Notes under the pieces: generated by a model
Seen by the model: only the letters and a program-made list of their open reading frames with translations
Databases searched by the model: none
What the model was told of the DNA's origin: nothing
Translations under genes and position numbers: made by a program
In this document: one piece after another, positions 28,197-54,203 of the stretch
Layout: each line of letters starts with the position of its first letter
Numbering within the stretch: position 1 is the first letter of the stretch
DNA from: Selaginella moellendorffii
Lineage: Eukaryota > Plantae > Lycopodiophyta
DNA length: 64,000 bases
Direction: 5' to 3'
Assembly: GCF_000143415.4 (NCBI RefSeq)
Contig: NW_003314301.1
Coordinates: 282,259-346,258, forward strand

Positions 28197-28358
28197 TGTA
28201 ATGCATGTGATCATGGGATGAGATTTGGATATACTGTCACCATAGATCCTTGGAACCTTGGGGGATAAATGGGGATAAAATAACCACTAAGAGCTCTCTC
28301 ATTAAATAATTACCCCTTTTTCAGTTGGCTTAAGGGGAGAGAAATAAGGTGCATTACA
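28197..28358 (+). mobile_element. Solo LTR of the same TRIM family (162 bp, opposite orientation)
   Basis: TGTAATGCA...TGCATTACA; TSD CCATT on both sides; reverse complement of 27624-27785. Confidence 0.9.
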
Positions 28359-28509
28359 CCATTTGATTTGGTTGAGCTAGAGAGCCCTTTTGAAGTTGAG
28401 AACTTGATGAAAAAGATCATCCACGAAAAATTTCTTGGTGCCAATGGAGCTTGTTATCAACACTTTGCATGTGAAACATGTTGCAACACCTTCTTCTCTT
28501 GCCCCAGAT

Positions 28510-29790
28510 TATATGAGTTTTGCACGTGCTTAATGATGTGGCAAAAAATAAGCAAGGCATTGGGCCAATAACTATGATTAACCCAAAGTTAATCAATTGC
28601 TTCATTCAGGATCTTTCTCTACAATGACAGTAGTAGATAGTGATTCTAATTTGGGGTCTCAAGACCATGTAGACTAGTCATTACCAAACAATGTCTCTTT
28701 GCAACAGCAACAAACTCTAGATGATGTAAAAATGGGTGGAGAGAGTAGTGAACTAGATTTGTGTTTATCTTGATAAGGTAGAATCTAATCACTTTCCTTT
28801 CTAGGAACAACTGTTAAATTTTTGACATTCATCTCTAAATTGATATTTAAATGTAAAATGCATCTGCAAAAACAGAAAGAAAGACTAAGTAAAGCTTGCA
28901 AAAAGTATTAAACTTGATCTACTTGTTTCACCTCCATGCTAGCTTCGAATCTTTGTTCCAAATACCCTGGAGGTAAGCAACAAAAGTTCCAAGTCTCGAA
29001 GAAGATATAAGCAAATATCATCCAAATTGGAATTGCAACACTACCATTGCCTAATCCTTGTTGCTTGCAAAAGCCTAGATTCTTTCCTATGTTGACATAA
29101 TCATAGAGCTTGCAACTAAATTTTCTCTACTTTTATTGTTGATCTGCAGCAAGACCTGGTGGAAGAGAGCTTGATAATTTTTCAAGTGAGCAACATAGAG
29201 TTTCTCGTACGATAAAACTTCTACCAACTTCAATGTCACTAAAGACACTGTAACATGGTCTTTACCAATAGAAGTTGGATCTTTGAAAAAACCTTCAAAG
29301 GAAGAACTTATTGCTAGTATAAGCATTGCCCAATTCCAACTCCATAAGAGAATGCTCAAGATCATCTATTCTATCAAATTGCTATACATGCCTTGTAAGT
29401 ATCTAGGTTTTTTTCTCTAGAGTTGGAGTTGAGAATATTTTTTTCTCCTGGCTCTTTTGCTATTTATTTTTGTCTTTTTTATCTACATAAGCTATGCAAG
29501 GCACTCAAATTTTACCTTATCAAGATAAACACAAACTTGGTTCATTGCTTTCTCCACCCATCTCTACATCACTTAGAATTTGTTGTTGTTGTGAAGAGAT
29601 ATTGTTTGGCAATGATTGGTAATTGTAGGCTACATGGTCTTGAAACCCAAAACTAAAGTTGCTAGCTGCCACTACTATTGCAGAGAGAGATCCTGAATGA
29701 AGCAATTGATTAACTTTGGGTTAGTCATAGCTGTTGGCCCAATACCCTACTTTTTTGCCACGTAATTGAGCACATGCAAAACCCACATAA
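28510..29790. repeat. Diverged inverted repeat: ~280-bp arms (28510-28786 and 29508-29790) around a ~720-bp spacer
   Basis: e.g. GTGTTTATCTTGATAAGGTA / TACCTTATCAAGATAAACAC and ACCCAAAGTTAATCAATTGCTTCATTCAGGATCT / AGATCCTGAATGAAGCAATTGATTAACTTTGGGT. Confidence 0.85.
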
Positions 29791-32150: not shown

Positions 32151-35100
32151 TGTGAGTGCTTGGAATATGGAAAGGGAATACAAAAAATATGCATATCAAT
32201 TAGCCCAAAAACCCTAGTTTATAAACAGGAGCGAGTGGTCCAAATTAAAACCAATCCGACAGTTACCAAAATCCCACTACGCTAATATTAATATACAGCA
32301 TCGTAGCCATACATTTGGCCCTCACATCATCCCCTCCTCTCAGAATAATGGAAGGCCATCAGGGTTCTCTTGTAGATAGGCCAGGATTTGGAGGAACGTC
32401 AGGAGGAGGCATCGGCAGATCTGTAGACAGTATTAACTACTCCTGATCCCTTTGTATGAAGCATTTCAACCGTTGGACATGCATAATCTCCGGAGGATCG
32501 GCCTGTTGGACGTCATGCCGAACCTCATAAATTTGCGGTCCAACTTGCTACAACACCCGATACAGTCCTTTCCACTACACAAGGATCCCCTTAGATAAAC
32601 CACGTACCATAAGATGGGGAAAATAGACTAACACCAAATCATCCACTTTGTACTCTACAGGTGGAAGATGATGGGAGTTGTAGCGCCATTATTGTCCCAC
32701 TTGTATGCAGCCTAAGTGTTCAGTAGACTTTGCTCGGACAAGTGGAAGAATGCTCGTCAAATATTGATCCCATGACCTAGCATCAGGAGCTCGTGGCAAT
32801 CACGAAGGTAAACCTAGCTCCGTTGGTAATATTGGATCATGACCATATAGAAGTTTATATAGTGAAGCACCAACAGAACTTTGCACCCCTGTGACAAGTA
32901 TATCGAAGAAACGGCAAATAACCATCCCAATCCGAATGCTGAAAGTTCACATACTTCGCAATAATCCCTTTGAATGTCCAAATGAGCCGTTCCACCAGAC
33001 CATCTGATTGTGGATGATAAGCACTCATAAAAGTGTGGCATATCCCTAACCAAGATGTCAAAACATGAAATACCTCAGCCATAAATGTAGGACCATTATC
33101 CGAAAGAATCTGCTCTGGACAAGAATGTTGGAACACCACTCGATTGAGGAGGAAGTATCCAACAACAATTGTAGAGGTGCTAGCAAGAGCACCAACTTCC
33201 ACCCAACGAATCAAGTAGTCAAAAACAATAATAACATACTCATTGCCAATAGTCGACCGTGGAAAAGGTCCCATAAGATCAAATGCCACCAACTTAAATA
33301 GATGGGAAATTGCAATTGACTCCAACCGTCCTTCCGTAGCACAAGGGGTAGTATTATGAGCTTGGCACTAAACGCAGTTACACACATAACATACCAAATA
33401 ACATCACGTTGCATTTCCGGCCAATAGAAAAATCTGCGCAGCTTCTCGGTCACACGATGATATCCCATATGCCCACCTAGAACAGGAGAATCATGGTACA
33501 CATGGAGAAACCACGTAATAAAGACAGAAGGCACCATCAGCCGTAAATGATCATCAGGATCTGTCCCCACAAAATAAAGAAGGCCATCTTTAAGGCGATA
33601 TTGAGAATATAAATGCTAGAAAGGAAAGTCATCAGCAAGTGATGCAGGATTCTTAAATACATCTCGAAGCCTTCGAATCCACAGCTCAATCTTTTGAGCC
33701 TCACGAACCTCATCAAGAGAAGGTAGATCTTGCTTTGCGCCTTGTGGACACTAAACGTCAAGTACAGCAACTGCCGATGGCATAGAATCCTTGTCTAAAA
33801 AATCCATAGATGCTGGAACAACAGGCTCATCAGAAACATGAAAAGAGAGTGGAGAAGGAAGAGGAGCTCGAAAAAGGGCATTAGCATCAGCCATAGAACT
33901 CCCTGGGCAATGAACAACATCAAAATCATATATCTGAAGCTTCAAAAACCATCGAGCAGTACGACCAGCCAAGTTCTTCCACTTCAATAATGAAGTAACG
34001 GCAGCATGGTCACCTTTAAGTAACGTCCGAGAACCATATAGATATGCATGAAGTTTCTCGAAACCCCAAACTGCCACTAAACACTCTTTCTCTGTCGTGG
34101 AGTAGTTCACCTCTACTGGTTGTAACGTATAGCTTATATATGCAATAGGATGACGTTGACCAAGCACACTCATGATTAAGATCAGCACAGTAGAGGCAAA
34201 GATTATGAGATATTCGACGTTGCTTCTCAGCAGGACTCAACTTCCCTCTAATGAGTCGGGGAGTACCAGAAATATCCATCGGGACCGGAGCAGTAGGTTC
34301 AGGAGTATGTCCTGAAAACTCAAGTTGGGATTCCTGAGTCTGGGACGGAAAAACAGCGGCGCGGCAATTTTCCTGACGACGTTCAAAGAGATAATTGTCG
34401 CATCGAACAGCTTTGTTGATGGCATCCGATAGGTCCTTGGGATCCTCCATGGTGAGCAACAAATCCTTGACACCATTGTTGAGGCCGAAATGAAATTGGT
34501 TAATTAGGGCCCACTCATCCCATTGAGTGTCCAAGGCAAGGAGTTGGAACTCTGCAGTGTAGATCGAGGCAAAACAAGACCCCTGAGAGAGACGTCTCAT
34601 CTTTGTGGTAGCAGCCCGAACCCAATCCATCTCGCCAAAACATGCTTCGAGCTTCTCTTTGAACAATTGAAGATCCATCAGCTCTGGAACCACAACCCCT
34701 TTCATGCTCTTCTCCAGAACCATGACAAAGCTACACCTTTGAGCAATGTCCCAATCGCGCCGATATGAGACTCAGGAGTGGGGTACCGCCAATGTTGAAG
34801 TGCGAAGATAAACTCCATCTGGTTCAGGAATCCACGAAGCTCTAAACGCTTGCCTGAAAATTTTGCCGGGAAACTCACCTTTGGTTCAGGAACTTTGCTG
34901 GATCCTTGAGCTGAAAGTGAAGCAAGCTCTTGCTGCATGTAAAGAAGGGTCGCCTTCAGCTCGGTATTCTCAGACTGGATTTTTGCAAGGACTTCAGCAA
35001 AGAAATCAAGATGGCTTGGAGACTCCATTGGCAAAAAGAAAGAAAAAGGGGGAAAAAGGGCAAAGGTAGTCAAACAATCAAAATGAGTTAAAGCAAAAAA

Positions 35101-36591
35101 TGAAAAAACACAATCTGAATCAAACGGTCAAAACCCCCAACAAGATCAAGACTGGAAAATACAAAAGACAAAGAGAAAAGCTAGTGGAAACAAAGAAGAG
35201 GCCTTAGACTAGCGTTGATTCAGATTGTGGAGAAATAGAACAAGGCTAACTTATATATACTATAGGTTGATGAAGCTCCACCACTCTTGGATCGAGGATA
35301 GCCTAAATATAATTGAGGTCGAGGAGGCACCACATCATCATCAGGAATGTGGCTCAAGACTCAAGAATCGTATAGGAAATCAGAAACTCAGGAATAGAGA
35401 AGTGTCTCGAAAGTCAAGAATAGGGAAGTGTCTCAAGAGTCAGGAATAGGGAAGTGTCTCAACAGTCAGAAATGTGGTCTGCAAGTCAGGAATCCGGTGA
35501 GAGTCAGGAATGTGGCAAGAATTGGGGAATTCCTGACAATAGGAAGTGGAGCTGAAGGACAAAAAGTGGAATAGGTGACATCTCATAATGTTGTGCCAAG
35601 GGTGGCAGGAGCAAGTGCATGCACAAGTCCGACAAGATCTTGACGAAGTGCTAGCCACAACATTCTTAGCTTGATCTGCTCCAACATATTGGGCTCCGCA
35701 CGAAGTAAAAGACTTCGGAAACAAATGCCAAATTGCATCACCGACTCAAATGGCCTTTGGCGAAGACGATGCAATTGTTGGAAGGCATCATCACAGTCGT
35801 CAGCATGTCCAAAGGTGCGTTTGAAAATGTCCGGAAGAACACTCCAATCCCCACGAATAGCCACGCTCAATCCATTGTACCACTGCAATGCCATTCCTTG
35901 GAGACACGTGGGAAACTCATGCAAATGTCGAGCATCATCCCAAGAATGATATGTGGCAATCACCGTGAAGTAATCGAACCAATGGTACATATCATCCCTA
36001 GGATTCCCACGAAAGAACTCTGGTTGAATGCAAGGATTGGCACCAAGAGCAGGAGGAGTTGGACTGCATGCTGTGAACACCATCATCAATTGAATTTGGT
36101 TGTTCAATTGCAAGTGTATAGCATCAAGCAATTGGACCAACTGTTGCTTTAAAGTTAAAGGAGGAGATTGCTAATCTGCCATGAAGATGAATGAAAAAGA
36201 AAGAGCAAAAAAAGAGAAATGACAAAAAGCTAGAAGGAAATGGTAGATCCAGACAATGCAAAAAGCTAGATCTAAACCAAAATCTTGAAAAGGAAGAACA
36301 AAAGAAAAAAAATGAAAAAAGCTAGATCTAAATTATGTAAAAGCTAAATCTAAACCAAAATCCCAAATCCAAGTACTCCTCAGGGACAATCAAAAGTGCC
36401 CCTCACCACCACCAATGTGAGTATTTGAAATATAGAAAGGGAATACAGAAAATATGCATATCAATTAGCCCAAAAACCCTAGTTTATATACAGGAGTGAG
36501 TGGTTCAGATTGAAATCAATCCGATGGTTATCAAAATTCTACTATGCTAATATTAGTATACAGCATCGTAGCCATACACTTGGCCCTCATA
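32151..36591 (-). mobile_element. Ty3/Gypsy LTR retrotransposon, defective, with a nested second element
   Basis: 176-bp LTRs at 32151-32326 and 36416-36591 (TGTGAG...CTCAC/TA); TSD (A)ATGT; PPT at 32327-32340; TGG-starting PBS at ~36414-36397; gag 36140-35583, RNase H 34188-33751 (NYSTTEKECL, DHAA, ARW), integrase HHCC and core 33570-32855, C-terminal remnant. Confidence 0.92.
34160..35538 (-). mobile_element. Nested 5' portion of a second Gypsy element (putative LTR 35226-35538 plus a sushi/PEG10-like gag)
   Basis: TG..CA-bounded 313-bp block with internal ~25-bp tandem repeats; gag with PAKFSGKR, PVPMDIS, GKLSPAEKQRR and a CLYC..H knuckle, fused directly to the RNase H region. Confidence 0.7.
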
Positions 36592-38055
36592 ATGTTAATC
36601 AAATATTCAGAATGTTAAAAAATATATTATATACTTAGAAATATTTATGATATTTTGAACAGTTATAGTATAGATATCCAAAAGCTGGATAGTTAATAAA
36701 AAAAACATAAATGTATGTAATAGTCAATATTAAAAAACTTCTCAATAATAGTTGAGTTGTAATCATAATTCTTACAATTATTTATTTTTAATATAATTAA
36801 AATTTTCAACTAATGTGATAAATTTTTTACGTAATACATAAATTATTTATATAAAAATTAATTATGATGCTTAGCTTTAAATAAGTGATGATACTTCTGT
36901 CATTTAGAAGTGTTGATAACTATTTATATCAAATATTATATTATATACATAAAAAATCTATATATTCTATGAAAAGTTAAAAATAATTCTTAAAACATTT
37001 CTCCTTATAGTGCATAGATTTTGCATTTGGTTGTACATATATTTTTTAATGTTGTTAAAACTTTTGAAATATTACTATCAATTGACAAAAAAGTTAAAAA
37101 AATAATTTCATTATATAAATTTTTTAAATTTAATGTGTTAAAAATAAAACAATTTATGCTAGACTTTTAATAAAATATTATATAATAAATTAATTTTTAT
37201 TTAAAATATAGTGTTTATGGAATGTTATATGGGAATTCATTTTTTAAAAATTATGTTACGATCCAATATTAGTAAATAAAATGAAGAAAAATAAAATAAA
37301 ACAAAACTTATCAAATTAATTAATATTTTATTTAAATTTTAAATTTTAAAAATAAATAAACAAGCTATCGACTCAATGAGAATTGTTGTGACTGTCTAAC
37401 CTTACACTAGAATTTTTCAATTATTTTATATATAATAATTTAAAACAAATATCTTTAAGTTTTTGAAATTTAAATTTAAATTTAAATGTATTATATACAT
37501 AATAAATCCGGAATTTAGCTAGCAAAATATTCAGGAAAAATATTATATAATCAAACAGTTTTTTTATGCAACAACAGAAAAACATAACTTTTCTTTTGTA
37601 ATGAGTCATGGAAGTGATGATGGTGATCTTGCGTGGTGGAAACCTGACTATTAGGACCATCACAGATGGTGGTGCTTCCTTAGATTTTTAAGGAATGCTT
37701 CCTGTGCCGATTGAAGTAGGCGCAACTTTAGATGTCTGCATTAACATCTACAACTCTCAAGGAACAATGAGCTGTATGTGTAAATCCATCACATATTATT
37801 AACAGCAGGTTTTATTCATTTCAGATGCTAGGCGAGCAATTGTACCCACTGGTGGACATAGAACATGACCACACATGGCCAACGTGACCGTCATGCTTTT
37901 TGGAGATGGACCACATGGAGGTTTTACATCTGATTGAGTGACCAGAGGATCTGAAGGCTATGGCCATGGAAGTGTTGAGGAAGGCCAAACTTTTTCAATG
38001 AGGCCTTTGCTAGCTTTAGTTGAAGGATTCTATTGTTTAATTCGTCTGTGTTCTG

Positions 38056-39139
38056 CTAGCCATAGTGAAGCTTTGCAACTTTGAGAAGATACTCCAACAG
38101 GATGGCAGGCTTGCTGAAGAATGGGCTGTGATCGGAATGAACATGCAAAACCCATTTCAGTGGATTGTACTTGATCATCAAATCCTGCAGCTTGGGTGAA
38201 ATCAGCTTGTCTTGTGTTGTCTTCACGAAGTACCTCGGAATTGATACATACTTCTCCCGTGAGAGCTCAGCACTGTGGTGCTTGAAAAGTGGGCGAGGTT
38301 TCAACAGCAACTTTGCTAAAATTACATCTTTGGATGGAGAAAGGTGGTAGAGCACGTCTTCTACTACGTAGAGCTTGAATGCCACAGCAACAGGGGTCTT
38401 TGATCCATTGGAGTAGAAGTACACTTTGCTGTTTTGTACCGCCATGTTGTTAGTAATAACCTGTAAGTTGACAGCAATTGAACACTTATAAGCATCCACT
38501 TTGCTGCTGCTCTTGATGTATCTATAGAACAGCTTTGGCAAAAAAAGAACAGAAATGAAATCAAGCAAGAGTTTTATATGAATTTAACAATATCAAAACA
38601 ATATACCTGGTTGTAAACAAAAGTTCCGTTGGAGCCCCTTGGAAACATATTTGCAGCCACAAACATAGCAGCTGCAATTTGGTGAGGGTCCTTTCCATCA
38701 CATAGGTGAGACTGTCACCTCCGAGACTGTGACCAACCAAGATGATCTGCAGTAACAGTACTTGTTTTGGGTGAAGACCAGCAATAAAACATCAATATCA
38801 GGTTTGCAATGTTAGTTACCTTGTGGCCACGCGGCACCGATCGGAGGCGGGCCGGAGTATTGCTCCAGGCTGGTCACAGACCGGCGATCAACTCCGTTGA
38901 TCCCCGCGCTGGTCAAGTCAACGGCGCTGACCATGTGGCCTCGCTTCTGTAGTTGATGTACCAGCACCAAGCGCCGTGGCTTGCTCCATGAACAAGAACA
39001 AATGGGAACTGGCATTCTGCTGCTGACTTGCTTTTTGGATTTTTGATGCTGTGGAAGTACCAATTAGATTGCCGCCGTTGCAGAAGAATGATCCGAACAA
39101 TCCAAAGAGTAGCAGCAACAACACTGCAGCCTGATGCAT
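38056..39139 (-). pseudogene. Methylesterase (MES/SABP2-like alpha/beta hydrolase) with N-terminal signal peptide, frameshifted
   Basis: Three exons (39139-~38819, 38746-38607, 38460-38056); VHGA, AVDLTSAG, GHSLGG, QDKLI, DHSPFFSKP; frameshifts in exons 1 and 2. Confidence 0.88.
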
Positions 39140-40243
39140 CTCCTTAGTGCACTCAACGAGATTCTCACCAAATTGGAGAAGCTGAACAAGCTGCTGCTTA
39201 CCCTTGAATCAAAGGGCAATTGCTACACCAAAAAAAGAGATGTTGGAGCTGTCAACGTGGAAAGCAAGGGAGCAAACTGTAAGGCTTTTTCTTTCAATTT
39301 ATGATAAAATATGGCAATTCCAATTTACCACGAGGGTCTCTTCAAGCTTAACAGCACAAGCTTGGTTAAGAGTATCTGCAATAGTAATGTTGTCCCCAAA
39401 CATGGAAAGCGCATGGTTAGGCGTTTACTAGGCTAGGAACAAACGGTTGACACTCTTTCTAATAGTAAGAAGCTGCCAAGTCAGACCAAGTCACAGTTAC
39501 CCAATGTCCAGGTCAACAGCCTCCTTGATGGGCGGGCAGGCCTGAATCGAGCTTCACCCTCGAGCAGCACACTCCATGGATCTAGCCACCAGCGGTGTCA
39601 TCCATCCGGCATGGCCGCTCCAAGAGCTTTATACCAAGAAGTTGATCTATAATAATCTTGACTTTAATTTATCAAATTGAAAATAAATAAAAGAAAAGAA
39701 AATAAATTTGACAACTAAACTTGACCATATACCTTTTAAAAAATTCTAGATTATTCATTTCAATCAAAATACATTATTCATTTATAAATATTAATAAACA
39801 AAAAAACATAAGTGTACTTTGAAATTATGCTAGATAAACTGTATACTAGTTTAAGAGAAACAAACAAAAAACTTTGGTAAATAACGAATATACTAATCGA
39901 AATATAGTTTATCTCTGGTTTCTACTGCATCTTTTGTGAAATCTGTAATTAAGGAACCTTCTAGACGTCAAACGTTCAAGTTGGTAAGACCAATAAATTG
40001 AGATGACTATATGGACAACGTGCACCGTATAAAACAACAAGATTTCTCTCCAAGTATGTGGCTACGTGTGTAAGGTACAGAATACGGATCACACGGAAAT
40101 AGAAAACGTGAAATATGATCTCTGATAGCTCTGATAGTATAAAAGACCCTTCTCCAGCCTCTGTTTCCTCAACCCACAGAGGAATAGAAAACATTCTCCA
40201 ATCAAGTTGATCAGATTGATCAGACAGTTTTCACCATTTCGAA
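39140..40243. promoter_or_regulatory. Head-to-head intergenic (putative bidirectional promoter) region between MES and the oxygenase
   Basis: Homologous region lies upstream of all three intact oxygenase copies; TATAAAA about 105 nt before the ATG (40138; also 15940 and 22791). Confidence 0.55.
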
Positions 40244-40593
40244 ATGGCTGCAATCGTGTTGATGATTCCGTTTCCCGTGATGGCTGCAGCATGGAAGATG
40301 GTGTGTATCCACAAGAGAGAAGAGAGGGCACGATTTCTAGCGTTGCTCCACCCCAGGTACATGTACTCAGTGAAATTCCCCTTCCTCTTGCAAAAGGCAC
40401 TCGAGTTTGGCACAATCCACACGCTCGGCATCCCGGGGATCATAAATTTGCTCTTCAAGACCAAGTATGGCTTCAAGGACCCACAGCAGCGTGCTGTCGA
40501 GGCCAACATTGTGGTGAGCGAGATGATCCACCACCATGTTGACAGTGATCGTGGCTCATACGCAGTGAGCAGATTGAATGGAATCCATAACAA
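40244..40593 (+). pseudogene. Truncated oxygenase copy (left hairpin arm)
   Basis: Matches the first ~125 codons with a 24-nt deletion (HPVRDAHKILWY->HPRY) and many transitions. Confidence 0.92.
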
Positions 40594-41002
40594 TGGGGCT
40601 GACCACGTTGAGGCAGAGGGCGTAGGCGAATTGGTCGTTTGGGATCTTGAATTTGTTGTGGATTCCACTCAATCTTCTCACCGCATACGAGCTGTGATCA
40701 CTGTCAACGTGGTGGTGGATCATCTTGCTCACCAGAATGTTGGTCTCGGCAGCACACTTCTGTGGATCCTTGAGGCCGTACTTGGTCTTGAAGAGCAGAT
40801 TTGTGATCCCCAGGATGCCACGTGTGTGGATTGTGCCAAACTCGAGCACCTTTTGCGAGAGGAAGGGGAATTCCACTGAGTACATGTACCTGGGGTGGAG
40901 CAACGCTAGAAATCGTGCCCTCTCTTCTCTCTTGCGGATACACACCATCTTCCATGCTGCAGCCAATATGAGAAACACAATCATCAACACGATTGCAGCC
41001 AT
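40591..41002 (-). pseudogene. Truncated oxygenase copy (right hairpin arm plus loop)
   Basis: Same 24-nt deletion; extends to ..NVVSPI and joins the left arm through a shared CAA. Confidence 0.92.
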
Positions 41003-41258
41003 GTTGAAATGGTGATGTTTATAAATTATAAATACAAGATTAATTTAAATAAATAATAACCATTAAATGGTAAAATATCCTAAAATATCCAAGCATATTT
41101 TAAATATATTCAAGTTAAACCAAAAAGCCTTACCTTTCCTCAACATCTCTTTTTTAAAATATATGATTGGTGTAGCAATTGCCCTTTGATTCAAGGGTAT
41201 GCAGCAGCTTGCTCAGCTTTTCCAATTTGGTGAGAATCTTGTTGAGTGCACTAAGGAG

Positions 41259-41572
41259 ATGCATCAGGCTGCAGTGTTGCTGCTTCTACTCTTTGGATTG
41301 TTCGGATCATTCGTCTGCAACAGTGGCAATCTAATTGGTACTTCCACAGCATCAACAATCCAAACAGCAAGTCAGCAGCAGAATGCCAGTTCCCATTTTG
41401 TTTTTGTTCATGGAGCAGGCCACGGCCACGGTGCTCGTACAAGGTAATCGATCAACTACAGAAGCGAGGCCACATGGTCAGCGCCGTTGACTTGACCAGC
41501 GCGGGGATCAACGGAGTTGATCGCCGGTCTGTGACCAGCCTGGAGCAATACTCCGGCCCGCCTCCGATCGGG
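41259..41572 (+). pseudogene. Inverted duplicate of MES exon 1, truncated
   Basis: MHQAAVLLLLLFG...HFVFVHGAGHG, then MVSAVDLTSAGING; ends at a ~30-bp TRIM-LTR scrap (GCTATTTTATCCCCATTTATCC). Confidence 0.85.
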
Positions 41573-43199
41573 CTATTTTATCCCCATTTATCCTTCCATG
41601 GCCATAGCAAACCTCCATTAGGAAAGCATGCCCGTCACGTTGGCCATGCGTGGTCATGTTCTATGTCCACCAGTGGGTACAACTGCTCGCCCGGCATCTG
41701 AAATGAATAAAACCTGTTGTTAATAATCTTTGATGGAAACAAAAGAATCTATTCTAATGTGGACATTTGAAGTTGCCCCTACTTCAATTGGCACAGGAAT
41801 CATTCAGGGAGCACCACTAGTTCTAATAGTTAGGTTCCCACCACACAAAATCACTATCATCACTTCCATAACTCATTACAAAAGAAAAGATTTTTTTATC
41901 TTTGGCTAAAAAATCTATTTGATTTTTTTCCTCAATATGTTTTAGCTAAATTTCTGTTTTATCATGTATGAAATACATTTTTAATTTTAATTTTAACTTT
42001 AATTTTAAAATTATAAATCTCAAAAATATTTTTAATGTATTATATATATAAAAATATTAAAAATAGGTCTAGTTTAAAGGAAGACACTCACAGTAATTCT
42101 CATTAAGTTAATAGATTGTTTATTTATTTTAAATTTCAAATTTTAAATTAAATATTAGTTAAGTTCATAAGTTTTATTTGAGTTTTACTTTCTTCACTTC
42201 TTTACTAATATTGGATAATAGCGTAAATTTTATTGAAGAAAACTCCCACATAAAATTTCATAGATACCTTTTTAAATAATAAATAATTTATTACATACTA
42301 TTTTATTAAAAGTCTAGTATAAATCATTAATATTTATAAAATATTAAATTTAAGAATTTTATATAATGACATTATTTTTTCTTTACTTTTTGGTGGAAGG
42401 GATTCAATATTTCAAAATTTATGACAACATTAAAAAATATATGTACACTCAAATGAAAACTATTTACACTATAAAGTGCAATAATAATAGAATACATATA
42501 TATTTAATTTATATAATATAATATTTTTATTAAGTAATGATCAACACTTCTAAATGACACAATATCATGACTTATGCAAACCTCAGCATTATAATTTATT
42601 TTTTGTATAATTAATTTATTTATTATTTAGAAAATTTTATCATATTAATTAATGTTTTTAATTATATTAAAAATAATATTTTGTAAGAATTATGATTACA
42701 ACTCAATTACTATTTACAATTTTTGTAACATTGAGTATTGTATACATTTGTTTTTTTAATATCCAACTTTTTTATATCAATACTATAAATTTTCAAAAAA
42801 TCATAATTTTTTCTAAGTATGTAATATAACTTTTAACATTATCTTAAAATTTTATAAATTAAAGGAACATTTCTAAAATTTTGCATAAATCAACAGCATA
42901 CCTCTTACAATCTAGGGATATTTGCTACTTCCCAGGAAAATTTTTATTCCAAGTCTCTTTAAGACCACTTAAAACTATTTTGTTTAACAATTTCTTTACT
43001 TTGCGACCCACCCTAGGTGCACTTCTCCTTTTGGGATACCTTCTTCAAATTTTATAGAACTTAATTAGAACATATTATATTTCTCCTTCTTATTCTTTAA
43101 TACTTGTACATATTCATAAAATGTAGCCACTAGTACATAGTGTTGTATAGTGTGAAATGATTTTTGTGGCTAAATTTTTATTATGTAAGCATATAAAAT

Positions 43200-43960
43200 G
43201 GCATAACATGTTTTGAGCCCTAAGAGACTTCAAATATATGTGAGTTTAAATTTCTTAAACACATATCTTTAAACGTGACTGTTTTTTTCAAGCCATGGGC
43301 ATGCTTGCCACATTTGCATTATTTTATACACATCCTCATCAGGTAAGAATTCTTAATGCACCAGCTCATGCAAAATCCAAGTCAGTGAGTAAGGAGCCAA
43401 GTGAGAAGAAATCCTGCTGGCCCTAAAGGGAACTCTTGCTGGCCTACTTGCTCTATGAGACATCAAGTAGCAATTCAATCAAGCTAAGTGTCCACTTGCC
43501 GGCTGCTGTCGACTAATTTGGCAATACTATTGCTGCTTCATTAGGGCTCCTGACATTGTGGAGAGCACACAGTGCTCAAGCTCTTCACCAAGAATGAGGG
43601 TTTGATCCAAGGGAGTAGAATTGCAGCAGTAGTAGGAGGCAGGCCTTCGATGAGATTATCAGCAGATTGAAGCATTGTATGACGTGCTGGGCTCTAGCTG
43701 TTGGGTAGCATGTTTGACACGATTTAGCAATCAACATAGCATCTGAAAGCAACATAGTAACATAGAGATTCTCTACTATGTTCTTGGGAAGTTTGGGGAG
43801 GCTCATGAGGGTGGGTGGATCACCTGATCAGGCTTGTTTCGTGCTTTGCATGTTTTGTACAAGTTCACATACTTGCACACGTGGCATCAAATGTCTTGCC
43901 AATATTATAATGCATATAATCATGTTTTAATTGCTATATTAAAAATTAATTCTTAAAACT
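43200..43960 (-). repeat. Dispersed repeat with possible degenerate PPR-like coding remnant; diverged direct copy at ~56800-57540
   Basis: Shared blocks TTTTTTTCAAG..GGCATGC.TTGCCACAT, CTCTTCACCAAGAA..GTTTG.TC.A.GGGAGTAGAAT, and AATATTATAAT.CA.A.AAT..GTTT..ATTGCTAT. Confidence 0.5.
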
Positions 43961-44376
43961 TATGAACCAAAACTTCCATTGGATTTGTATATTTGTTTCC
44001 AATCTAAATTTATATGGCACTTAACACTGAATTAAAATATGAAAAGCTTATATGTCCACTTTGATGGATAGCATAACGAACCTTGTATTTGGCTTCGAGT
44101 CTAGTCTGTAGAAAGACTTACACCAAGAAGTAACTATTCCCCTTGAGGCAGTGTCATTGCAATCTTGCTCCGAGAAGAAACCATTTCGAGATCCAGACTC
44201 TGATTTGTGTGAGGACTGTATTTCAAGAGTCTGACCATATAAGCTGGATCTTCTTTTTGTCTCCAGGATTGGATGTTGCTTGAGATGTGAGCTGCACTGT
44301 TCCTATATTGACTATCGACGAAGCTTTGGACATGTATGTCATGACCACGAGAATGCATGTTAGATATATATATACA

Positions 44377-44465
44377 TCATTCTTGGATGTCAAGAATTCA
44401 CTGAAAGTGTGCAAACATATATATGTTTGCACCCTTTCAGGTGAATTCTTGACATCCAAGAATGA
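44377..44465. repeat. Near-perfect 89-nt hairpin (candidate MIRNA precursor or MITE remnant)
   Basis: TCATTCTTGGATGTCAAGAATTCAC-TGAAAGTGTGCAAACATA pairs with TATGTTTGCACCCTTTCAGGTGAATTCTTGACATCCAAGAATGA (one mismatch, one bulge). Confidence 0.85.
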
Positions 44466-44512
44466 CTACATACAGGTATATTCGAGTGTATTCTAGTTGA
44501 TTAACATATATT

Positions 44513-44578
44513 TCACTGCTAGTCTAGTGGAATAGCTCCCTGCCACAAAACAGACCCGGGTTCAATTTGGAAACGCTA
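44513..44578 (+). pseudogene. tRNA-Gly(GCC) pseudogene
   Basis: GTCTAGTGG-AATAG.TCCCTGCCAC...ACAGACCCGGGTTCAATT resembles plant cytosolic tRNA-Gly-GCC; D-loop deletion, broken anticodon and acceptor stems. Confidence 0.7.
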
Positions 44579-45216
44579 TGTTGTTTAGTCCTACAGCAGT
44601 TTTGTTGTCCTGCTGACACATTGTGTGCAACCTTGTTTGACACACAGAGTTCACAGTTTTTACCATCCTGCAATTTCTGACACATGTTATATGATGTGGA
44701 TTAGTGAGTCTCAGTGCAAATATCTACCATTTGGCCAGCTGCTGAGCTTCCCATTTCTTTGAAGTTGAGACAAGAATGACATGTCCTCACGCTACAAAGT
44801 AAACGACATTAAACAATACGACATAAACTATGTGCTCGGGATTTGTCAAGTGTGATCACTCCTCCCATCCTTGCAAGAAGTCTTCACATTTGTCGAGCCA
44901 TGAGACCACAATGCAATGGATGCAAATGAAAACTCCCCCAGCAACTATTAAGTGCTTGGCAACTATTAAAGTGCTTGGCAAAAAGCCTTTTACTAAGTTA
45001 GTCACAATCAACAATTCGCCTTCCATCACACGCAAGGGTTTTAAGTATATTCTGTAATTTAGGGTTTATACGGCATTGACAAGGTCTTTTTTCACGCGCT
45101 TTTAACTCCTTGATCTTGTCAATGCCGGACACTAGACACGACGCGAGGCAAAGTCTGACCCCCCGGGCACTGCTTAAATCTCTCAATCCCTAATCTTCCT
45201 GGAAAGAAGAAGAACC

Positions 45217-46302
45217 ATGGCAAATCGAGTGTTCTTCCTCGCATTCTTCCACTTCGCAATCATTGTGGGCTTCTCCTCGGGGCTCGACACCGCCATTCTA
45301 GCCGATCTTCCCACCAGCAATCTCGCCGGGGCGTGGGCGGATCTCCTCTCGCTCGTCGACGCACACAAGGGCGATTCCAAGCCCGCGATCCAGAAGCTCA
45401 AATCTTACTTCGTGGATTTCGGCTACCTCGGCAACTCCACTCTCACTGCCGATCTCTCCTTCGATGACGCGCTAGAGGCCGCCGTGAGGCTCTACCAGCA
45501 GAATTTCCACCTCCCGGTCACCGGGAACCTCGATTCCGCCACAATAGCCCAGCTCGTCACGCCCAGATGCGGTGGAATCGACGTGGATCCCAGCGGCGTC
45601 TCGCAAATGCTCCAGAATCTCACCCATCCCGGCACTTCCCATTTCGTCAAGCACTACTCCTTCTTCCCAGGAACGCCCAGATGGGTCTCCAAGCGATCGC
45701 TCACTTACGCATTCGATCAATCCACGACGTCGCTGGCCTCTGGAATCCCCCTGAATTCTCTCCGGACGGCCTTTAGCAGGGGATTCCAGCGCTGGGCGAA
45801 CATCGTCCCTCTCACATTCACAGAGACCTCGTCGATCTCCTCCGCGGACATCGTCATCGCGTTCGCGGGCTTCGATCACGGCGACCGGCATCCATTCGAT
45901 GGGCAAATGGGCGTTCTAGCTCACGCATTCGCTCCCGAGGATGGGCGATTCCACCTCGACTCCTCCGAGTCCTGGAGCGTCAATGTTCGATCCGCGACGT
46001 CGCTGGCCGCGATCGATCTGGAATCCGTGGTGACCCACGAGATTGGACACCTGATCGGGCTGGGCCACTCGGGCGATTCCGCGGCGATCATGTTTCCCAG
46101 CATCGCTCCTCGGCAGATCAAGACAGCGTTTGGACAGGACGATATCGACGGCGCACAGGCGCTGTACGGAGCCAATCCAAACTTCGTGCCGGGCTCGACC
46201 ACCGGTACGGACTCAAACGTCCAGAGTTCGAGCTCGTGGAAGGCCACGTTTTCTTGTTGGCATTTGCTTGTCCTCCTTGTCCTTGCCAAGATTCTTTTAT
46301 AG
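45217..46302 (+). CDS. Plant matrix metalloproteinase (M10A), intronless, probable GPI anchor
   Basis: Signal peptide, PGBD-like prodomain, cysteine switch PRCGGID, HEIGHLIGLGH zinc motif, Met-turn AIMFP, hydrophobic C-terminus. Confidence 0.95.
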   Translation: MANRVFFLAFFHFAIIVGFSSGLDTAILADLPTSNLAGAWADLLSLVDAHKGDSKPAIQKLKSYFVDFGYLGNSTLTADLSFDDALEAAVRLYQQNFHLPVTGNLDSATIAQLVTPRCGGIDVDPSGVSQMLQNLTHPGTSHFVKHYSFFPGTPRWVSKRSLTYAFDQSTTSLASGIPLNSLRTAFSRGFQRWANIVPLTFTETSSISSADIVIAFAGFDHGDRHPFDGQMGVLAHAFAPEDGRFHLDSSESWSVNVRSATSLAAIDLESVVTHEIGHLIGLGHSGDSAAIMFPSIAPRQIKTAFGQDDIDGAQALYGANPNFVPGSTTGTDSNVQSSSSWKATFSCWHLLVLLVLAKILL

Positions 46303-46328
46303 CAATAGAAAGATTCTTTCCGGGTTTG

Positions 46329-47531
46329 ATGATTCTAGGGCTCCTCCCACCGGTAGAGCGCCTTCTCGGGGTGGCGATTCCTTGCGCCGGCGCTGCCGCC
46401 GGATTCAATGCGGCATTGCTAGCATGGCAGGTGCGATCGCTGCTGCGAGCTGTGAATCGGGAAATTTATCGGGGATTTCTTGCGGATTTCTAGTGTGCAG
46501 GGAAGGCATTCCGGGTTTCTTGCGCTACCCCTGTTGCCGGATCGCTGCTGGGAGGCGTGGCGGTGGCATCGGCCTCGGTTCTCGCAGCTCAGGTTCTCGT
46601 TAATCAATTTCAGTCATAGATTTCTTTGATTCTTAGAGCTCTCTTTGCAACGCAGGTAGCGTTTGCGCTGGAATCTATTGTAGAAGAGGGCAATGGCAAG
46701 AGCCGGAAGAGGAAATTGCCGAGTGTTGGCGATCTAGTTCTTCATGCGGCAGTGGGCATGGTTTTGTTTAAGGTTTGCTTGGAAATTTTCATAGACTAGA
46801 CAATGTAGCCTACTGTTCATACAGATACTTGGCGGGCACTACAGGAATGTGATGCCAAGTAGCTTAAGCCATCCTGGAGCACTCTCACGATACTCAGTGC
46901 CTGGTCAGTTTGCCTCCTTTGATTTTTTCTCTCTGTCCCTCTCGTGCTGATTATTCTTTGGTCAGCTAGAGGATCAAGGTACGCAGGCGATGTAGAAGCA
47001 CAGCTCGTAAGAGACTTGTTTAGCAAGTATGGTTGTCATCACTGTGGAAGCTACAAAGGGACCAGGTACTCTCAATTTCCCTGGAGCTGACATTCACTCG
47101 TGAATTATTTTCTTAGCATAGCAGATCATATGCCACCCAACGTCGTGATGAAGAACAAGGTCGCCGAGAAACTGAGAATACTGAAAAAATTCAACTTTTC
47201 ACTTGCCAAGCATGTATTCAACATGGTCCATAAGCTCGAGTTGCAACGGTTCTACCCGCAGTGCGAAGCGTGTATGAGAAAGCAGGGTGGAGCTTTAAGG
47301 CAAGGCAAAAACGAGCTCGTCTACCATTTTAGAGTTGGCTTCCCAGAGGTAAATAAGTATTTCAACGCCACAAAGAATTATTTTTGTGTTTTTTGTTGCA
47401 GCCTCCATATCTCACAGGTTTTTTTCTCAGTGCTCTCAAGCTAGAGGACAATAACCAGGTAGAAACCTCACGAAAAATTGGCGACAGTTTACTCATCCAT
47501 GGTTTAAATACAGGGTACAGACAAAAAATGA
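46329..47531 (+). CDS. Spliced membrane protein with C-terminal HNH/His-Me-finger-like domain (not captured by the ORF track)
   Basis: GT-AG exons in phase: 46329-46430, 46494-46592, 46656-46772, 46825-46903, 46966-47065, 47117-47348, 47402-47458, then 47514-47531 (or read-through to 47566). Motifs GCHHCG, IADHMPP, QRFYPQCEACMRKQGG. Confidence 0.8.
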
Positions 47532-47532
47532 A

Positions 47533-48546
47533 TCACACCTTGACGAACTGGTGCCAGATTTCATAGTGATTGAACAAGAGACTATCGTGTGTCTGCTTGC
47601 CAACGTACTCCAGCTTCAGCTCTCGCAGCTTTTTGTTACACTCGTCTCCTCCGAGCCTGCTGCAAAACTTTATGTTGTGAGACACGAAAACTCTTCCACC
47701 CGGCTTGATCCTCGGCACGAGCTTCTCGAGACCAGTCCAGACGAGTTTATCAGGCATGTGAAGAAACGCTGCGCTTGCATAGACTACATCGTATTCATTG
47801 TCTCCTAACAGCTCGAATTCCAGATTGTCGCTGCGAACGATGACGGGTCTCTTGTGAAGCAGTCCTTGCGATGGCAACTCGTAAGAAAACGCAGCCATGA
47901 GCGAGAGCGGATCCTTTTCGATGCAGTGGTAGTTCCCGGCCGCGAGAAATCTGATGAAATGGAGGCCAACGCGCAGAGTTCCACAGCCAACTTCCAACAC
48001 CCGGTGGTGTCTCTTGAGAGCCGAGGCCTTTGCGATGAACTCAAAGACGTCTCGACCTCCAGCCCAAGGCTCGCCATAGTTGCTGTGGTGCTGCTCGACG
48101 AGAAGCTCGCTCGGACAAGGTAATCTCGTGTGGTTTTTCTCTTCGCTTTCTTCGTAATGAGATATCCCGTGGTACCTGTAGGAAGGAAACGCCAGCTCGC
48201 AACTCAAGCTTGCTATAGAGATCACTCGACCTTACCGGCGAAGATCATAGAGTTGCTCCTCTCTCGTCCGGGGATTTATCCCTTTGCGCATCCGGATCCA
48301 GTCCTCGGCCGACTTTGGAGGATCCCCAAGCTGGGCATTTGCCATCTGCGACGAAACCCATGTCAAATCCTCGCGACTCACACCCACAGCGTCCTCTTCG
48401 CGAGATTCGAGAGCTTGCTGCTGCTGCGGAGCGAAGGAGATCGATGGGCACAAGATGGTGGCGGTGTGAGGGAACAGCAGGAAGATCACGAGCAGTGGAA
48501 CAGAGACAACGAACCAGGAGAGAACGAGCGCTTTGGGACTGGCCAT
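47533..48546 (-). CDS. Class I SAM-dependent methyltransferase with N-terminal membrane anchor (2 exons: 48546-48236, 48175-47533)
   Basis: VLEVGCGTLRVG motif I, YDVVYASAAFLH, KPGG; 60-nt GT-AG intron in phase. Confidence 0.9.
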
Positions 48547-48640
48547 GGCTTGAATCTAAAGCTACATTCTCTAGAGCAATGTCAGGAACCCTAAAAATTA
48601 GAACTTGGTACGGCAATGGTATACGGACGTTAGGTCACCC

Positions 48641-51600
48641 ATGGCGATGGCGTCAATGCGGGGCTTGCAGATGTTTATCACGGATGTGAGGAACTGCCAG
48701 AGCAAGGATCAGGAGATGGCGCGCGTCGAGAAGGAGCTCAATAAGATCCGGATGAAATTCTCATACGAGAAGGTAGCAAATCTCTCTCTCTTTTTTTACG
48801 TTTCGATGGAACTGTGCGCAAATTTCAGAGTTTATCGTCGTATGAGAAGAAGAAATACGTGTGGAAGCTGCTCTACATCCACATTCTTGGCTATCAGCTT
48901 GATTTTGGGCATCGAGAGGTTCTTTCGCTTGTTGGATCGCATAAATATGCTGAGAAGCAAGTGAGTTCTCTCGGAGTTCTACTTTTCTCTCTCTCTTGCT
49001 TCACTGCTTATAGCTAAGGGCTAAGGAAATGCTCGCAGGTTGGCTACATGGTTGCTGGATGTTTGCTCCACGAAAACCATGAGTTTCTCAACTTGATCAC
49101 CAAAGCTATTCGTCTCGACATTATTGGTCGCAGCGAAACGTATCAGTGCCTTGCACTAACAATGGTAAGATCAATCGAAAGCTTTACACCAAGAGAAAAG
49201 AAGAAAACTCTCTCGTGCATGATCACAGATTGGAAACATCGGCGGCAGAGATTTTGCCGAAGCCTTGGCTCCGGATGTACAAAAGCTTGTCGTAAGTAGC
49301 TCCATTACTGCTCCTCTCGAATTGACAATGGAAGGCGCTATTTCTTTTCCAGGTTTCTGGTTCTTGTCGACCACTTGTGCGGAAGAAGGCGATTCTCTGT
49401 CTCCTTCACATTTACCGAAAGCATCCGGAGGTTATCCAACTGGATATATGGTAAGGAACTTATCCTAGTTTGCAGCATCAACTTGCATTGCTTGAAACTG
49501 GCTTGATCGGTCTGTAGGCCTGACCACATTGTGAATCTTCTTGACGAAAGAGATTATGGTGTTCTTTTATGTGTGATGACATTGCTTGTTGCACTAGCTT
49601 CAAATAATCCTCAGCAGTATTACTACTGTGTCTCAAAGTGTGTTCGCATTCTAGAAAGATTGTTGCGAAGTCAAAGCATTCCACAGGACTACACGTTCTA
49701 TGGAATCCCGTCTCCTTGGCTGCAGGTTTCTAGCTTAACTGCAGCTTCAGCAAATTCAAGTGCTAATAGTTCACTTTCAGGTGAAGACGATGCAAGCATT
49801 GCAACTGCTTCCATTGCTTGAAGACCCCTCTAGTGTGCGGCTGCTTCTCGAGGTTGTCTTCGTTCTCTCTCCCTCTCTTTTTTCTTCTCGTTAGACTTTA
49901 TATGACCATCGTTTTTTCTATCAGCTTCTCGAACGTGTTGTGATTGGGACCGACATCACTCAAAGTATAAACAAAACAAATGTTATGCACGCGGCTTTGT
50001 TTGAAGCCATGGAACTGGTAAGTTACTTCCTAGTTTTAGTCCGGCTTTGCTAACGATACTACAGCACCCTTGTCACAGATCATGCTGATTGATACACAGC
50101 AGAGTTTGATCCCAAGGTGTATGGTATCGCTTTCGAAGTTTGTTAGTCTTCGTGAACCGAACCTTCGATGTCTAGGCATGGTAATGTGCTTTGATGTACT
50201 CTCATTATATACTACTAACGTTGTTCATTGTAGAGAGTTTTAGCCCGGCTGCTGTCTGTGGCCGACGTCCGTGATAATGTGTGTGTTTATGAAACTGACA
50301 TTCTATTCTCCTTGAGAGAGGAAGACCGAAGGTTGGTTTGTTTGTTTTCCGGGTTTCCTAGTGATAAGTAACCCATTTGACAGTATCCAGAAGGTCTCTG
50401 TAGACCTTCTTTACGAAATATGTGATGCGACGAATGTCAAGCGCATAGTTGAAGAGTCCTGGAGGTATTTGGTTTTGTTTGTTTTGATTTCGAAATCAAA
50501 CGGTAACTTGTATGTAGTGTTTCTCTACGGCCGAGTTTGATGTTCAAGAAAGTATTGCCACAAAGGCTGGCCTTCTTGCAGAAAAATACGCAACAGATTG
50601 CTCCTGGTAAGCACAAGCTAGTGCTGGTTCAGAATGAGATGCGGTTTTGTTGAGATGTGGTGTGTGTCAGGTATGTGGACGTTGTTTTGCTTCTAGTTGA
50701 AAAAGGTGGAGCCCTTGTTCCGGATGATGTCTGGCGAGGGTTGATTCAATGCGTTGCAGAACATGACGATATACAAGTCTACGCCGCCACCAAAGCTCGG
50801 GAGTACATCAGCAAACCGATGGTTCACGAGACCATGCTTAAAGTAAGTTTTTCTGATTTCCGAACGACGACTCAGTAATGATTTTTTTGTCAGATTGCTG
50901 GGAGTCTTCTTGGAGACAACAGCCATTTACTTGCGCGAAAACCTGGCTACACTCCCAAGGAGATCTTTTGGGCCCTTCACGATAAGTTTTCAAATGTGAG
51001 GTAGGATGTGTGCTCCACTGAACTTTAATGAGTTTGATTATGTTTCCAAACAGTACGCCAACCAAGATGGTGCTGCTGTCTGCCTATATCAAATTGTTAC
51101 TGCATACACAGCCTGCAGATGAAGAGCTCCGGAAGGAAATTTTTCCTCTTTTTGAAAAGTGAGCTATTCTTGTTCTTTCCTTCCCTCATACTAGCATTCA
51201 CTACAGGTATGGGGAGCACCTTGAAGCAGACTTGCAACAACGTGCTATGGGATTTTTCTCTTTAAGCCAGCAGGATCAGAATATTTCTAATGAAGAACCA
51301 AAGCGACAGGTTCGTTCTTACAAGTGATGATTCTACGCAGTCTGACGTGCTTTTGCAGGAAGCTCCGGTAAAAAGCTCAAGGGATTCTCTCCCTGGAGTA
51401 CGTTATTTTGATTTTCTCATCGTCAGTAACATTTTTCTGGTCTATATTCCATCCAGACTTCAACAGCTAGAGCACCTGAAGTAGATCTTCTTGGGGACTT
51501 AGTGGCTCCTCGGCAAAACGACCCATTTCAAACGGGAATTACAAAGGATCCATTCTCTTCAATGCTCGCTCCTGCTGTTCAGGTAATAGAGTCTTTATTA

Positions 51601-53386
51601 TCCTTGCAGTAACTTGTTCTTTGTTTCTTTTGGTTTTTGCAGCCAACTGGAAACCTCATCGAATGGTTTAACGCCTTGTGTTACAAGGATACTGGAATCT
51701 TGTATGAAGATCCATACGTTCAGGTTTCTGGCATTGTTTAAGCTTGCAATTTGTGATTTTTCTTGGGTGCTTAGATTGGGATTAAAGCGCAATATCAAGG
51801 TCCTCGTGGCGAGATAAATTTCTATCTTGGTAATAAGCAAAGCGAGACTTTGACATCAGTCCGAGCCATTATCCTACCTCAGCCACATCTTAGAGTTGAA
51901 TTTCCGGGAGCTCCTCCAAGCATACAAGCTGCTGAACAGGTAGTAATGTCGTTGATAAGACTTCTAATTTCTTCATGATCGCCGTTGCAGATACAAGTGC
52001 TTCTTAAAGTGGCATGCTTGTATGCTGGGAGAATTGCTCCACTTCTCGACTTTTCTTATATGGTTTCTGGCATGACAGTAAGCTAAGCTTTCCCGTGTTT
52101 TATTTAGTGCTAACGTCCGCAGAACTCTTCTAGGTGTCTGTCAAATTGCGGATTCCAATTGTAATCAGCAAGTTTTTGCAACCAGCCACTCTCTCTGCAA
52201 ACGATTTTTTTTCTGCCTGGAGAGCTCTTGTTACAGCTCCAAACAAGCTTCAAGAAGTGGTATATGATCCTTTTCCATCGTTTTCTTCTGACTTCTATGA
52301 ATCCCTTTACAGATTCGTGGACTGCAGTATTCTACTGTCTCGGAGTTTTCTGACAAGCTAAACGGACTTCGCATAGGCGTGGCTACTGGACTGGTAAGCT
52401 AAGTCTGTTTTATAGATGCAAAACACGTAGACAAAGTTATCTTCCAGGAACCCAATCCCAATAACCTCGTTGCAGCCTCGAGTTTTCATTCAGAAACTGG
52501 TGGTGCTTTGCTGTGCATGGTAAGTTCATACCATTACGTACTCATTCCAGAGCTAAACAGGTTCCGTTTTCCCAGGTACGCATCGAAACAGATCCGGCTG
52601 ATAAGACGCAGTTACGCTTGACAGTCGCGTCGCCGAATTCACGCTTAGCACTAGAGTAAGCTTGATACTCTAAGCAGCACGTAGCTTGATTTTCTCATTT
52701 TTTTGTCCAGACTCAAGGAGTTTCTCAAAGAGCAATTGCCTGTGACTTTGCCAACGTCTACTCCTCCTGTTCAAACAGCTATGGTTCCAGTCCCACCCGT
52801 TTTACAGCCAGTTCTGCAGCCAGTTCAGTCAGTTCCAGCACCGATACTCTCCGCCCCTCCCATCACTGCAATGAGTTCTTCCAATCTGCAAGCGTTTCCC
52901 ACAGTTTCCACAGGCTTCGCTCAGAAACCTCTTCCTCTTTCTCGCAGTTTCACAACTCTGGCCATGATGGCTGGTCAAAATCTTTCGAGCTCCAATCCCT
53001 TCCCACCTATGAACGTCCCCGCGGTGCTTAATGATCCTCTTGCTGATCTCTTCGCTCCCAGTGATTTTGCGGCCTTAGCAAAGCCTTCCGCGTCATCATC
53101 CAATGCTGCACCAGTTTCTCTTCAAGAACCTCTCTCCTCAGCTGCTGTTCATATTCCTGCTTCGAACTACAGACAGGAAAACACTGGAGCCCCAGACAGT
53201 ATTGATCTTCTCGGACCCGACACTTCAGCCGAAGCTCTAGTCTCCAATCCAAGCTCGAGCGGCGAACAGTTTACAGCTGGCAATCCGTTTACTGACCTCG
53301 ATAGCGCTCCTGAAGCTTCTACTCCACCTCCAAATGCTCAACCGAGAAATCCAGCGTCAACTTTTGACTTCGAGGACCTCTTGTAG
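48641..53386 (+). CDS. AP-2 complex alpha-adaptin-like protein, divergent, >20 exons, with a long C-terminal tail
   Basis: MRGLQMFITDVRNCQ, EKKKYVWKLLYIHILGY, YGIPSPWLQV, REPNLR, GILYEDPYVQ, RIETDPADKTQLRLTV, LKEFLKEQL. Confidence 0.92.
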
Positions 53387-53445
53387 ATAACAGGTACTTC
53401 TTCTTCTCCGTTTTCTTTTATCTCATTTCTCGCTCTAGGGTTGTA

Positions 53446-54013: not shown

Positions 54014-54203
54014 AACTCTCGCGGACATTACGGATGACGTGAGAAGATAATAAAATTGTATGCACAGAAGCGCCAAAACCTGACCAGAAAATCTCTCCGG
54101 CCAGAACGTATGCAGGATTACAAGCCAACTCTACAGTTATGTTTGCCACATTGAAGACAATCAAGAGTATATTTCTTGGGTGGGCCCAATATCTCCATGC
54201 ATA

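Follow-up and report, generated by a model that had tools for sequence, protein, structure and literature searches.

The soybean CHS I locus is an endogenous inverted-repeat siRNA locus, and fold-back inversions, palindromes with a central asymmetric spacer, are a general signature of genome instability. Inverted repeats that encode hairpin RNAs are methylated and silence themselves, and in the case of PAI1-PAI4 methylation can occur independently of its transcription (PMC9263138), with unlinked PAI paralogs becoming methylated over the sequence they share (PMC3203196). In angiosperms, inverted-repeat siRNA loci are diced by DCL2, DCL3 and DCL4 with the help of DCL1 (PMC10827316), and the young miRNAs miR822, miR839 and miR869 depend on DCL4 (PMC3707012). 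The lycophyte Selaginella moellendorffii has DCL1 and DCL3, lacks a DCL2 orthologue, displays no clear 24-nt small-RNA peak and, in adult aerial tissue, no CHH methylation (PMC5569507). Its DCL4 is disputed, as the same study describes DCL4 orthologues in each land plant studied whereas PMC3835848, with Banks 2011 as its reference for the statement, reports DCL4 as well as RDR6 to be absent; according to that one source, the enzyme required by miR822, miR839 and miR869 would be missing here. Judged by the reported machinery, S. moellendorffii is poorly equipped for classical inverted-repeat siRNAs.

A gene-derived inverted repeat and its source family

The window, by which we mean the whole 64,000-nt stretch of S. 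moellendorffii DNA analysed, maps to scaffold GL377605.1 in the JGI assembly and contains an inverted repeat with arms of 363 nt each (40231-40593 and 40653-41015), which stand 59 nt apart and are 90% complementary with 38 mismatches. With two inverted copies of a gene part and a long stem, it belongs to the structural class of gene-derived endogenous inverted repeats. RNA folding, proposed as a check in the first-pass annotation of this DNA, yields a long stem with a minimum free energy of -671 kcal/mol (z = -49.5 against 20 shuffles), and 359 pairs are predicted in the stem of a plus-strand transcript. The assembly annotation calls no gene at the hairpin. The left arm (plus strand) extends from position -13 of the source gene to position 374 of its coding sequence (CDS), is 8.0% divergent and has lost 14 of 59 CG positions, while the right arm (minus strand) likewise runs from -13 onward, has lost 19 CG positions and is devoid of an upstream region of its own. 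Together with the loop (40594-40652, minus strand), a single antisense copy of CDS 375-433 in which none of the eight CG positions is lost, the right part of the structure (40591-41015, minus strand) covers the gene from -13 to CDS 436. The two 5'-half pseudocopies are joined tail-to-tail, as the first-pass annotation had observed, by a CAA microhomology at 40591-40593 that belongs to both arms, being CDS 372-374 in sense and CDS 434-436 in antisense orientation. The estimated stem length of about 360 bp was also accurate, whereas the loop, given there as about 70 nt, measures 59 nt. Since a microhomology of at least 3 nt is expected in about 5% of random junctions, the CAA overlap is suggestive only.

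Both arms exhibit the same in-frame 24-nt coding deletion, located after about 40354 in the left arm and near 40891 in the right arm and corresponding to about 23008-23031 of an intact copy. The 21-mer across the deletion junction occurs in the two arms only when the window and 11 other loci are compared, and the deletion is also present in the right arm of the second haplotype. Carrying diagnostic alleles in addition to this unique junction, the arms form one clade in a phylogenetic tree (support 0.96). The simplest order of events, in which one copy that had already suffered the deletion folded back, is likely, and the earlier claim that fold-back followed the lesion stands at that strength; it is unproven, because nearly all of the substitutions common to both arms are located at CG sites (seven such changes, 4.6 expected by recurrence) and because the sole long perfect duplex of the stem, a 61-bp stretch at 40312-40372 (plus strand) that is longer than expected by chance (p about 0.02), spans the deletion and may represent a conversion tract, and conversion between the arms could have spread the deletion.

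The 347-aa product of the source gene matches the MpaB/Lcp catalytic domain (PF09995) with an E-value of 1e-12 and 48.9 bits against a cut-off of 23, a domain match that assigns the gene to the MpaB/Lcp family; the only informative relative of solved structure is trans-anethole oxygenase (8s1j), as a weak match (E 0.009). Genome-wide, at least 22 similar proteins are encoded on at least eight scaffolds (90% protein cluster, both haplotypes counted). The window harbours three of the gene copies, which differ at 5-7 coding sites and specify an identical protein where sequenced. Copy 1 (6358-7401, minus strand, 347 aa), a potential target of the hairpin, and copy 3 (22897-23940, plus strand, 347 aa; PF09995 at E 1e-12, above the gathering score) are intact, while in copy 2 (16066-17109, plus strand) the first 67 coding bases fall within an N gap (16033-16132). 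The hairpin had been described as matching three intact genes over 21 nt or more. The matches are indeed there, with eight exact antisense runs of 21-63 nt against copy 3 and 124, 75 and 103 perfect antisense 21-mers against the three window copies; the count of intact genes has to be revised in view of the gap in copy 2 and of the size of the family. Close family copies are matched by 113-132 perfect antisense 21-mers, and allowing two mismatches, about 298 of the 405 right-arm 21-mers match close copies and 229-239 match distant ones. By sequence comparison, the hairpin thereby possesses the antisense matching to paralogs over at least 21 nt that is expected of a PAI-type trans-silencer, and perfectly matching antisense 21-mers could be produced from it if it were transcribed.

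The arms contain open reading frames of 211 and 148 aa, which are absent from the protein collection by exact look-up and have no Pfam match. A homologue search with the 148-aa frame returned one distant fragment only, and no deleted form was found among the called proteins of 81-259 aa. A protein-coding role of the 211-aa read-through frame was considered and rejected, as the frame is truncated, lacks eight conserved residues and matches no Pfam family, and as the synonymous fraction of the pooled arms is neutral (p = 0.21; the left arm taken singly has a mild excess of 14/29 synonymous changes, p about 0.05).

The enclosing duplication, its promoter and the second haplotype

The hairpin sits in the middle of a larger inverted duplication, now decayed, which has mirrored outer arms and reaches at least 3.6 kb leftward of the stem. 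The outer left arm (38837-39231, minus strand) is the 5' part of a methylesterase-like (alpha/beta hydrolase) gene and is mirrored in the outer right arm (41167-41571, plus strand) by an inverted copy with 4.1% substitutions; a further outer arm (41623-42858) is an inverted copy of 36595-37899 at 75%. The left half of the duplication (36908-40593) is colinear with a block of methylesterase, promoter and gene at the opposite end of the array (L001 6633-10374, a locus on the same scaffold), and its right half corresponds, with unchanged orientation, to the inverted partner gene of that array. In L001, some 7-11 kb to the left of the window, a tail-to-tail pair of intact family genes (9980-11713 and 11918-13651) forms 1734-bp arms with 15 mismatches (99.1%) and an N gap at the centre. 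This intact pair is a possible read-through source of double-stranded RNA and, as such, a stronger potential source than the hairpin. Additional palindromes are found in L003 and L011, two loci on other scaffolds. With palindromes recurring across the array, inverted duplication is normal behaviour for the region.

Several other features of the array were recorded. A non-coding inverted repeat with 843-bp arms (9596-10437 and 10975-11817, 98.7%, 538-bp spacer) is located between gene copies 1 and 2, and short inverted and direct repeats of 65-285 bp (80-92%) cluster at 27056-29790, to the right of the gene array. Fragments of the oxygenase 5' end of about 190 bp occur in L003 (5260-5449 and 11576-11749) and L011 (12328-12517 and 24883-25072), inverted relative to nearby intact copies and 1.4-2.1 kb apart. 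The methylesterase-like alpha/beta hydrolase copy itself spans 38056-39231 (minus strand), and pieces of this gene's 5' end accompany most of the array's oxygenase copies. Decayed remains of an LTR retrotransposon (32855-36140, minus strand; gag and integrase core, sub-threshold Pfam matches) separate the intact genes from the hairpin block. At 44377-44465, a near-perfect 89-nt fold-back (45 bp, -62.5 kcal/mol) has many sub-threshold Rfam miRNA matches, and the second haplotype has its right arm only; it is probably a recent fold-back scar and not a miRNA. An intact 779-aa open reading frame with a P-loop-like motif and no Pfam match (60500-62839, minus strand) has a 756-aa allele in the second haplotype and a possibly similar 669-aa gene, also with no Pfam match, at L001 4131-6140; it may resemble the Crinkler-type ATPase/nuclease proteins expanded in Selaginella.

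Directly upstream of the left arm, the MpaB/Lcp-like gene's native upstream region is retained as a copy (39463-40230, plus strand) together with a TATA-like box, TATAAAAG, at 40138-40145 (plus strand), about 100 nt before the old ATG, in agreement with the first-pass annotation. The region differs by 5.8-8.6% and 10-14 indels from those of the intact copies and has lost 3-4 of 30-42 CG sites, the proximal promoter 1-3 of 18-20; the box is also found in the intact copies and in the second haplotype. As the TATA-like box is kept and the promoter CGs are largely spared, transcription could still take place. A sigma-70 promoter scan returned matches at chance level, from a model that is not applicable to a plant. 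On the other side of the stem, the upstream region of the right copy has been replaced by AT-rich filler (41017-41112) that is also found at 2423-2513 and 12657-12752, so that one promoter only faces the stem. An AATAAA motif is located at 41048, 33 nt past the stem.

In the second haplotype (GL377654.1, locus L013), the promoter is followed by a 100-N gap and then by the right arm, which carries the 24-nt deletion too and has the same orientation. The gap starts 24 nt before the expected stem and stands where the left arm would be, which fits a hairpin that defeated Sanger sequencing; the sequence beside it departs from the gene sooner than the window does, by 38 nt. Next to the gap, 43 nt (L013 4467-4509) have no match in the compared loci; they stem either from reads of poor quality or from an insertion into the second haplotype's loop. 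The haplotypes also differ by an inversion of about 19 kb (window 39811-59211), which extends from the hairpin promoter across the matrixin and adaptin genes; one of its breakpoints falls at about 39811-39950, and a 140-bp segment is flipped locally at the left breakpoint. In the second haplotype, an inversion breakpoint is positioned about 290 bp upstream. The allelic right arms are 8.0% apart, whereas neighbouring intergenic DNA differs by 3.7-4.6%, the matrixin gene by 1.3% and intact copies by about 1%; the difference from the adjacent 3.7% stretch is significant (p = 0.001). The allelic promoters are 6.0% apart with six indels, and TATAAAAG is kept in both. The hairpin structure probably persists in both haplotypes although these are old.

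CG decay, pairing and the origin of the hairpin

CG loss was scored as C>T or G>A at the CG positions of the intact reference. Pooled over the locus, 33 of 118 positions are lost in the stem as opposed to 10 of 115 in the upstream region, loop and outer arms (p = 0.0002), whereas a Fisher test of promoter against arm on a small subset gave p = 0.40. The arms have lost 15-22 of about 60 CG positions, intact copies at an equal distance (23-34 differences) 1-6 of about 68. As the CG-to-TG decay is confined to the stem, it points to methylation of the stem in cis: the stem would be, as an inverted repeat, under heritable CG methylation, with a deamination footprint coextensive with the repeat. That the decay ends with the stem and leaves the loop untouched is also strong evidence for a real and long-standing palindrome.

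In the intact copies, no excess CG loss was detected over CDS 1-436: CG-loss variants amount to 3/70 in the shared 5' part, against 4/80 for the 3' part, and the CpG observed/expected ratios of the two parts are 1.05 and 0.83. By their CG-loss footprint, the paralogs do not appear to be methylated over the shared sequence in the manner of targets of a PAI-type trans-silencer. This argues against heritable trans-methylation; cleavage of mRNA and somatic methylation fall outside that test. The arm mismatches comprise 17 that form G:U pairs on the plus transcript, 14 that do so on the minus transcript and seven transversions, with no strand bias (p = 0.72). Together with shared changes close to the number expected by recurrence and alleles that are 8% apart, this places the pairing under no visible selection of the kind expected for a MIRNA gene.

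Taken together, we consider it probable from these sequence features that the hairpin is a fold-back scar in an unstable, palindrome-rich array, which is methylated in cis, drifts and is silent or incidental, with no selected role. In a first step, a block of methylesterase-like gene, upstream region and MpaB/Lcp-like gene would have been copied from the array, and the gene copy would have lost 24 coding bases; the homology of the block and the deletion are seen directly, and their order is the presumed part. A strand broken near CDS 436 may then have folded back on the 3-nt inverted microhomology and been copied for at least 3.6 kb leftward, or equivalently a tail-to-tail pair may have undergone a central deletion; either mechanism would account for the observed junction, in a palindrome with a 59-nt spacer. 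AT-rich filler, which is observed in place of the right copy's upstream region, would later have left the 363-bp stem as the only tightly paired part. Such a tight inverted repeat could have drawn CG methylation on the stem only, as the footprint suggests, and deamination would subsequently have removed the quarter to third of the stem CG positions now missing. Finally, any leaky transcript or small RNA would have left no heritable mark on the intact family, consistent with the hairpin having no selected role. Several considerations weigh against the scar. The proximal promoter kept its TATA-like box and most of its CGs, so that self-silencing of the promoter is conjectural; small RNAs from a hairpin transcript could themselves have guided the stem-confined methylation; the structure probably survives in two old haplotypes; post-transcriptional cleavage would leave no footprint in DNA; CG loss can be masked in the intact copies, as these are young and under purifying selection; and the left arm has its mild synonymous excess.

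Alternatives and comparison with described systems

The first of these considerations leads to the strongest alternative, for with the promoter CGs spared the locus could still be an active siRNA source. According to this alternative, which we regard as a minority possibility, the hairpin is an active endogenous inverted-repeat siRNA locus: the native promoter co-transcribes it with the family, Dicer cuts the transcript, and the right arm supplies antisense small RNAs that cleave mRNAs of the family and dampen dosage, incidentally or under weak selection. The box in both haplotypes, the extent of predicted pairing on the plus strand, the number of perfect antisense 21-mers to close copies and the AATAAA motif past the stem all accord with such a locus, as does a methylation footprint coextensive with the stem, and mismatches and G:U pairs can release hairpins from self-silencing (PMC9263138). 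Against it stand the lack of selection on pairing, the fast divergence of the alleles, the indels in the second-haplotype promoter and the intact copies without a CG-loss footprint in trans; moreover, DCL2 is absent (PMC5569507), DCL4 and RDR6 are reported absent in PMC3835848 on the authority of Banks 2011, and the family went on amplifying with intact frames. In a more elaborate form, which we find doubtful, the hairpin would be transcribed from the spared promoter, be freed from self-silencing by the mismatches and G:U pairs that deamination created and be diced without DCL2, and perhaps without DCL4, into small RNAs that cleave mRNAs of the family of more than 20 copies. It would then be a natural feedback damper, co-regulated with its targets, and a MIRNA gene at an early stage of its birth, in a lycophyte whose siRNA pathway is reduced.

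The first-pass annotation had gone further in this direction and had proposed a co-regulated silencer or dosage-feedback module. Its observation is confirmed and its interpretation is partly supported; the module itself receives no positive support, given that the intact copies show no CG loss in their 5' half, that the arms are without selection for pairing and their alleles diverge faster than neighbouring intergenic DNA, that palindromes are routine in the array, and that DCL2 and a 24-nt peak are reported missing in S. moellendorffii. Nor is the locus an undescribed system, as had been suggested, since gene-derived inverted repeats are a described class and the hairpin would belong to it even if active.

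That the hairpin is a young MIRNA gene, from which DCL1 releases one dominant duplex targeting the family, is very improbable. The origin matches the inverted-duplication model (Allen 2004, as presented in PMC3707012 and PMC10827316), DCL1 is present (PMC5569507), and the 61-bp stretch is cleaner than chance. However, this stretch can be explained by conversion and has five mismatches against the right arm of the second haplotype, and the homology to the family spans the whole stem and is not narrowed to a duplex. In addition, no Rfam family matches the hairpin, none of the Selaginella-specific miR1080-1114 listed in supplement 4 of PMC5569507 (a subset of miRBase, screened by eye) resembles the stem, and the two nearest Selaginella miRNAs have no match to it within three mismatches. 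That the junction is a chimera, assembled from reads of two different pseudogene copies, is scarcely credible: this is a Sanger assembly with gaps at nearby palindrome centres (L001 and L013), and the second-haplotype sequence leaves the gene at a different point, yet the arms differ at 38 sites and have separate histories while sharing a deletion unseen in the other compared copies, the outer arms continue the same symmetry, the second haplotype repeats the order of promoter, gap and right arm in the same orientation, and a CG decay that ends at the stem and spares the loop requires a real, long-standing palindrome.

If the hairpin is silent, it constitutes a clean natural record of methylation placed precisely over a tight inverted-repeat stem in a lycophyte that reportedly lacks a 24-nt siRNA peak and CHH methylation, and is of modest interest for the recognition of inverted repeats. 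If it is active, the processing of long hairpins in the absence of DCL2 could be tested on it, as could the control of dosage in an enzyme family that was amplified recently.

Compared with the young MIRNA genes miR822, miR839 and miR869, the hairpin is likewise a fold-back of its target gene's own sequence (Allen 2004 model, as presented in PMC3707012), but no dominant duplex is known for it, it matches no annotated miRNA and its conservation is not focused. With IR71, Mu killer and soybean CHS I it has in common a long imperfect fold-back behind a Pol II-type promoter (PMC10827316 for IR71 and Mu killer), and, like them, it could in principle yield primary siRNAs without an RNA-dependent polymerase; for those three, transcription and dicing by DCL2, DCL3 or DCL4 are established, whereas both would be hypothetical for the hairpin. 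[quoted passage not shown] PAI1-PAI4, however, consists of two full-length genes behind a heterologous upstream promoter and methylates the unlinked PAI2 and PAI3, whereas both arms of the hairpin are 5'-half pseudogenes, its promoter is a native copy and its paralogs carry no CG-loss footprint; the intact 1734-bp pair at L001 is structurally nearer to PAI1-PAI4. With fold-back inversions the locus shares the asymmetric junction, the short microhomology, the small spacer and outer arms eroded by deletion: nothing essential sets it apart from them, and its particularity is that it falls inside a gene copy that retains its upstream region.
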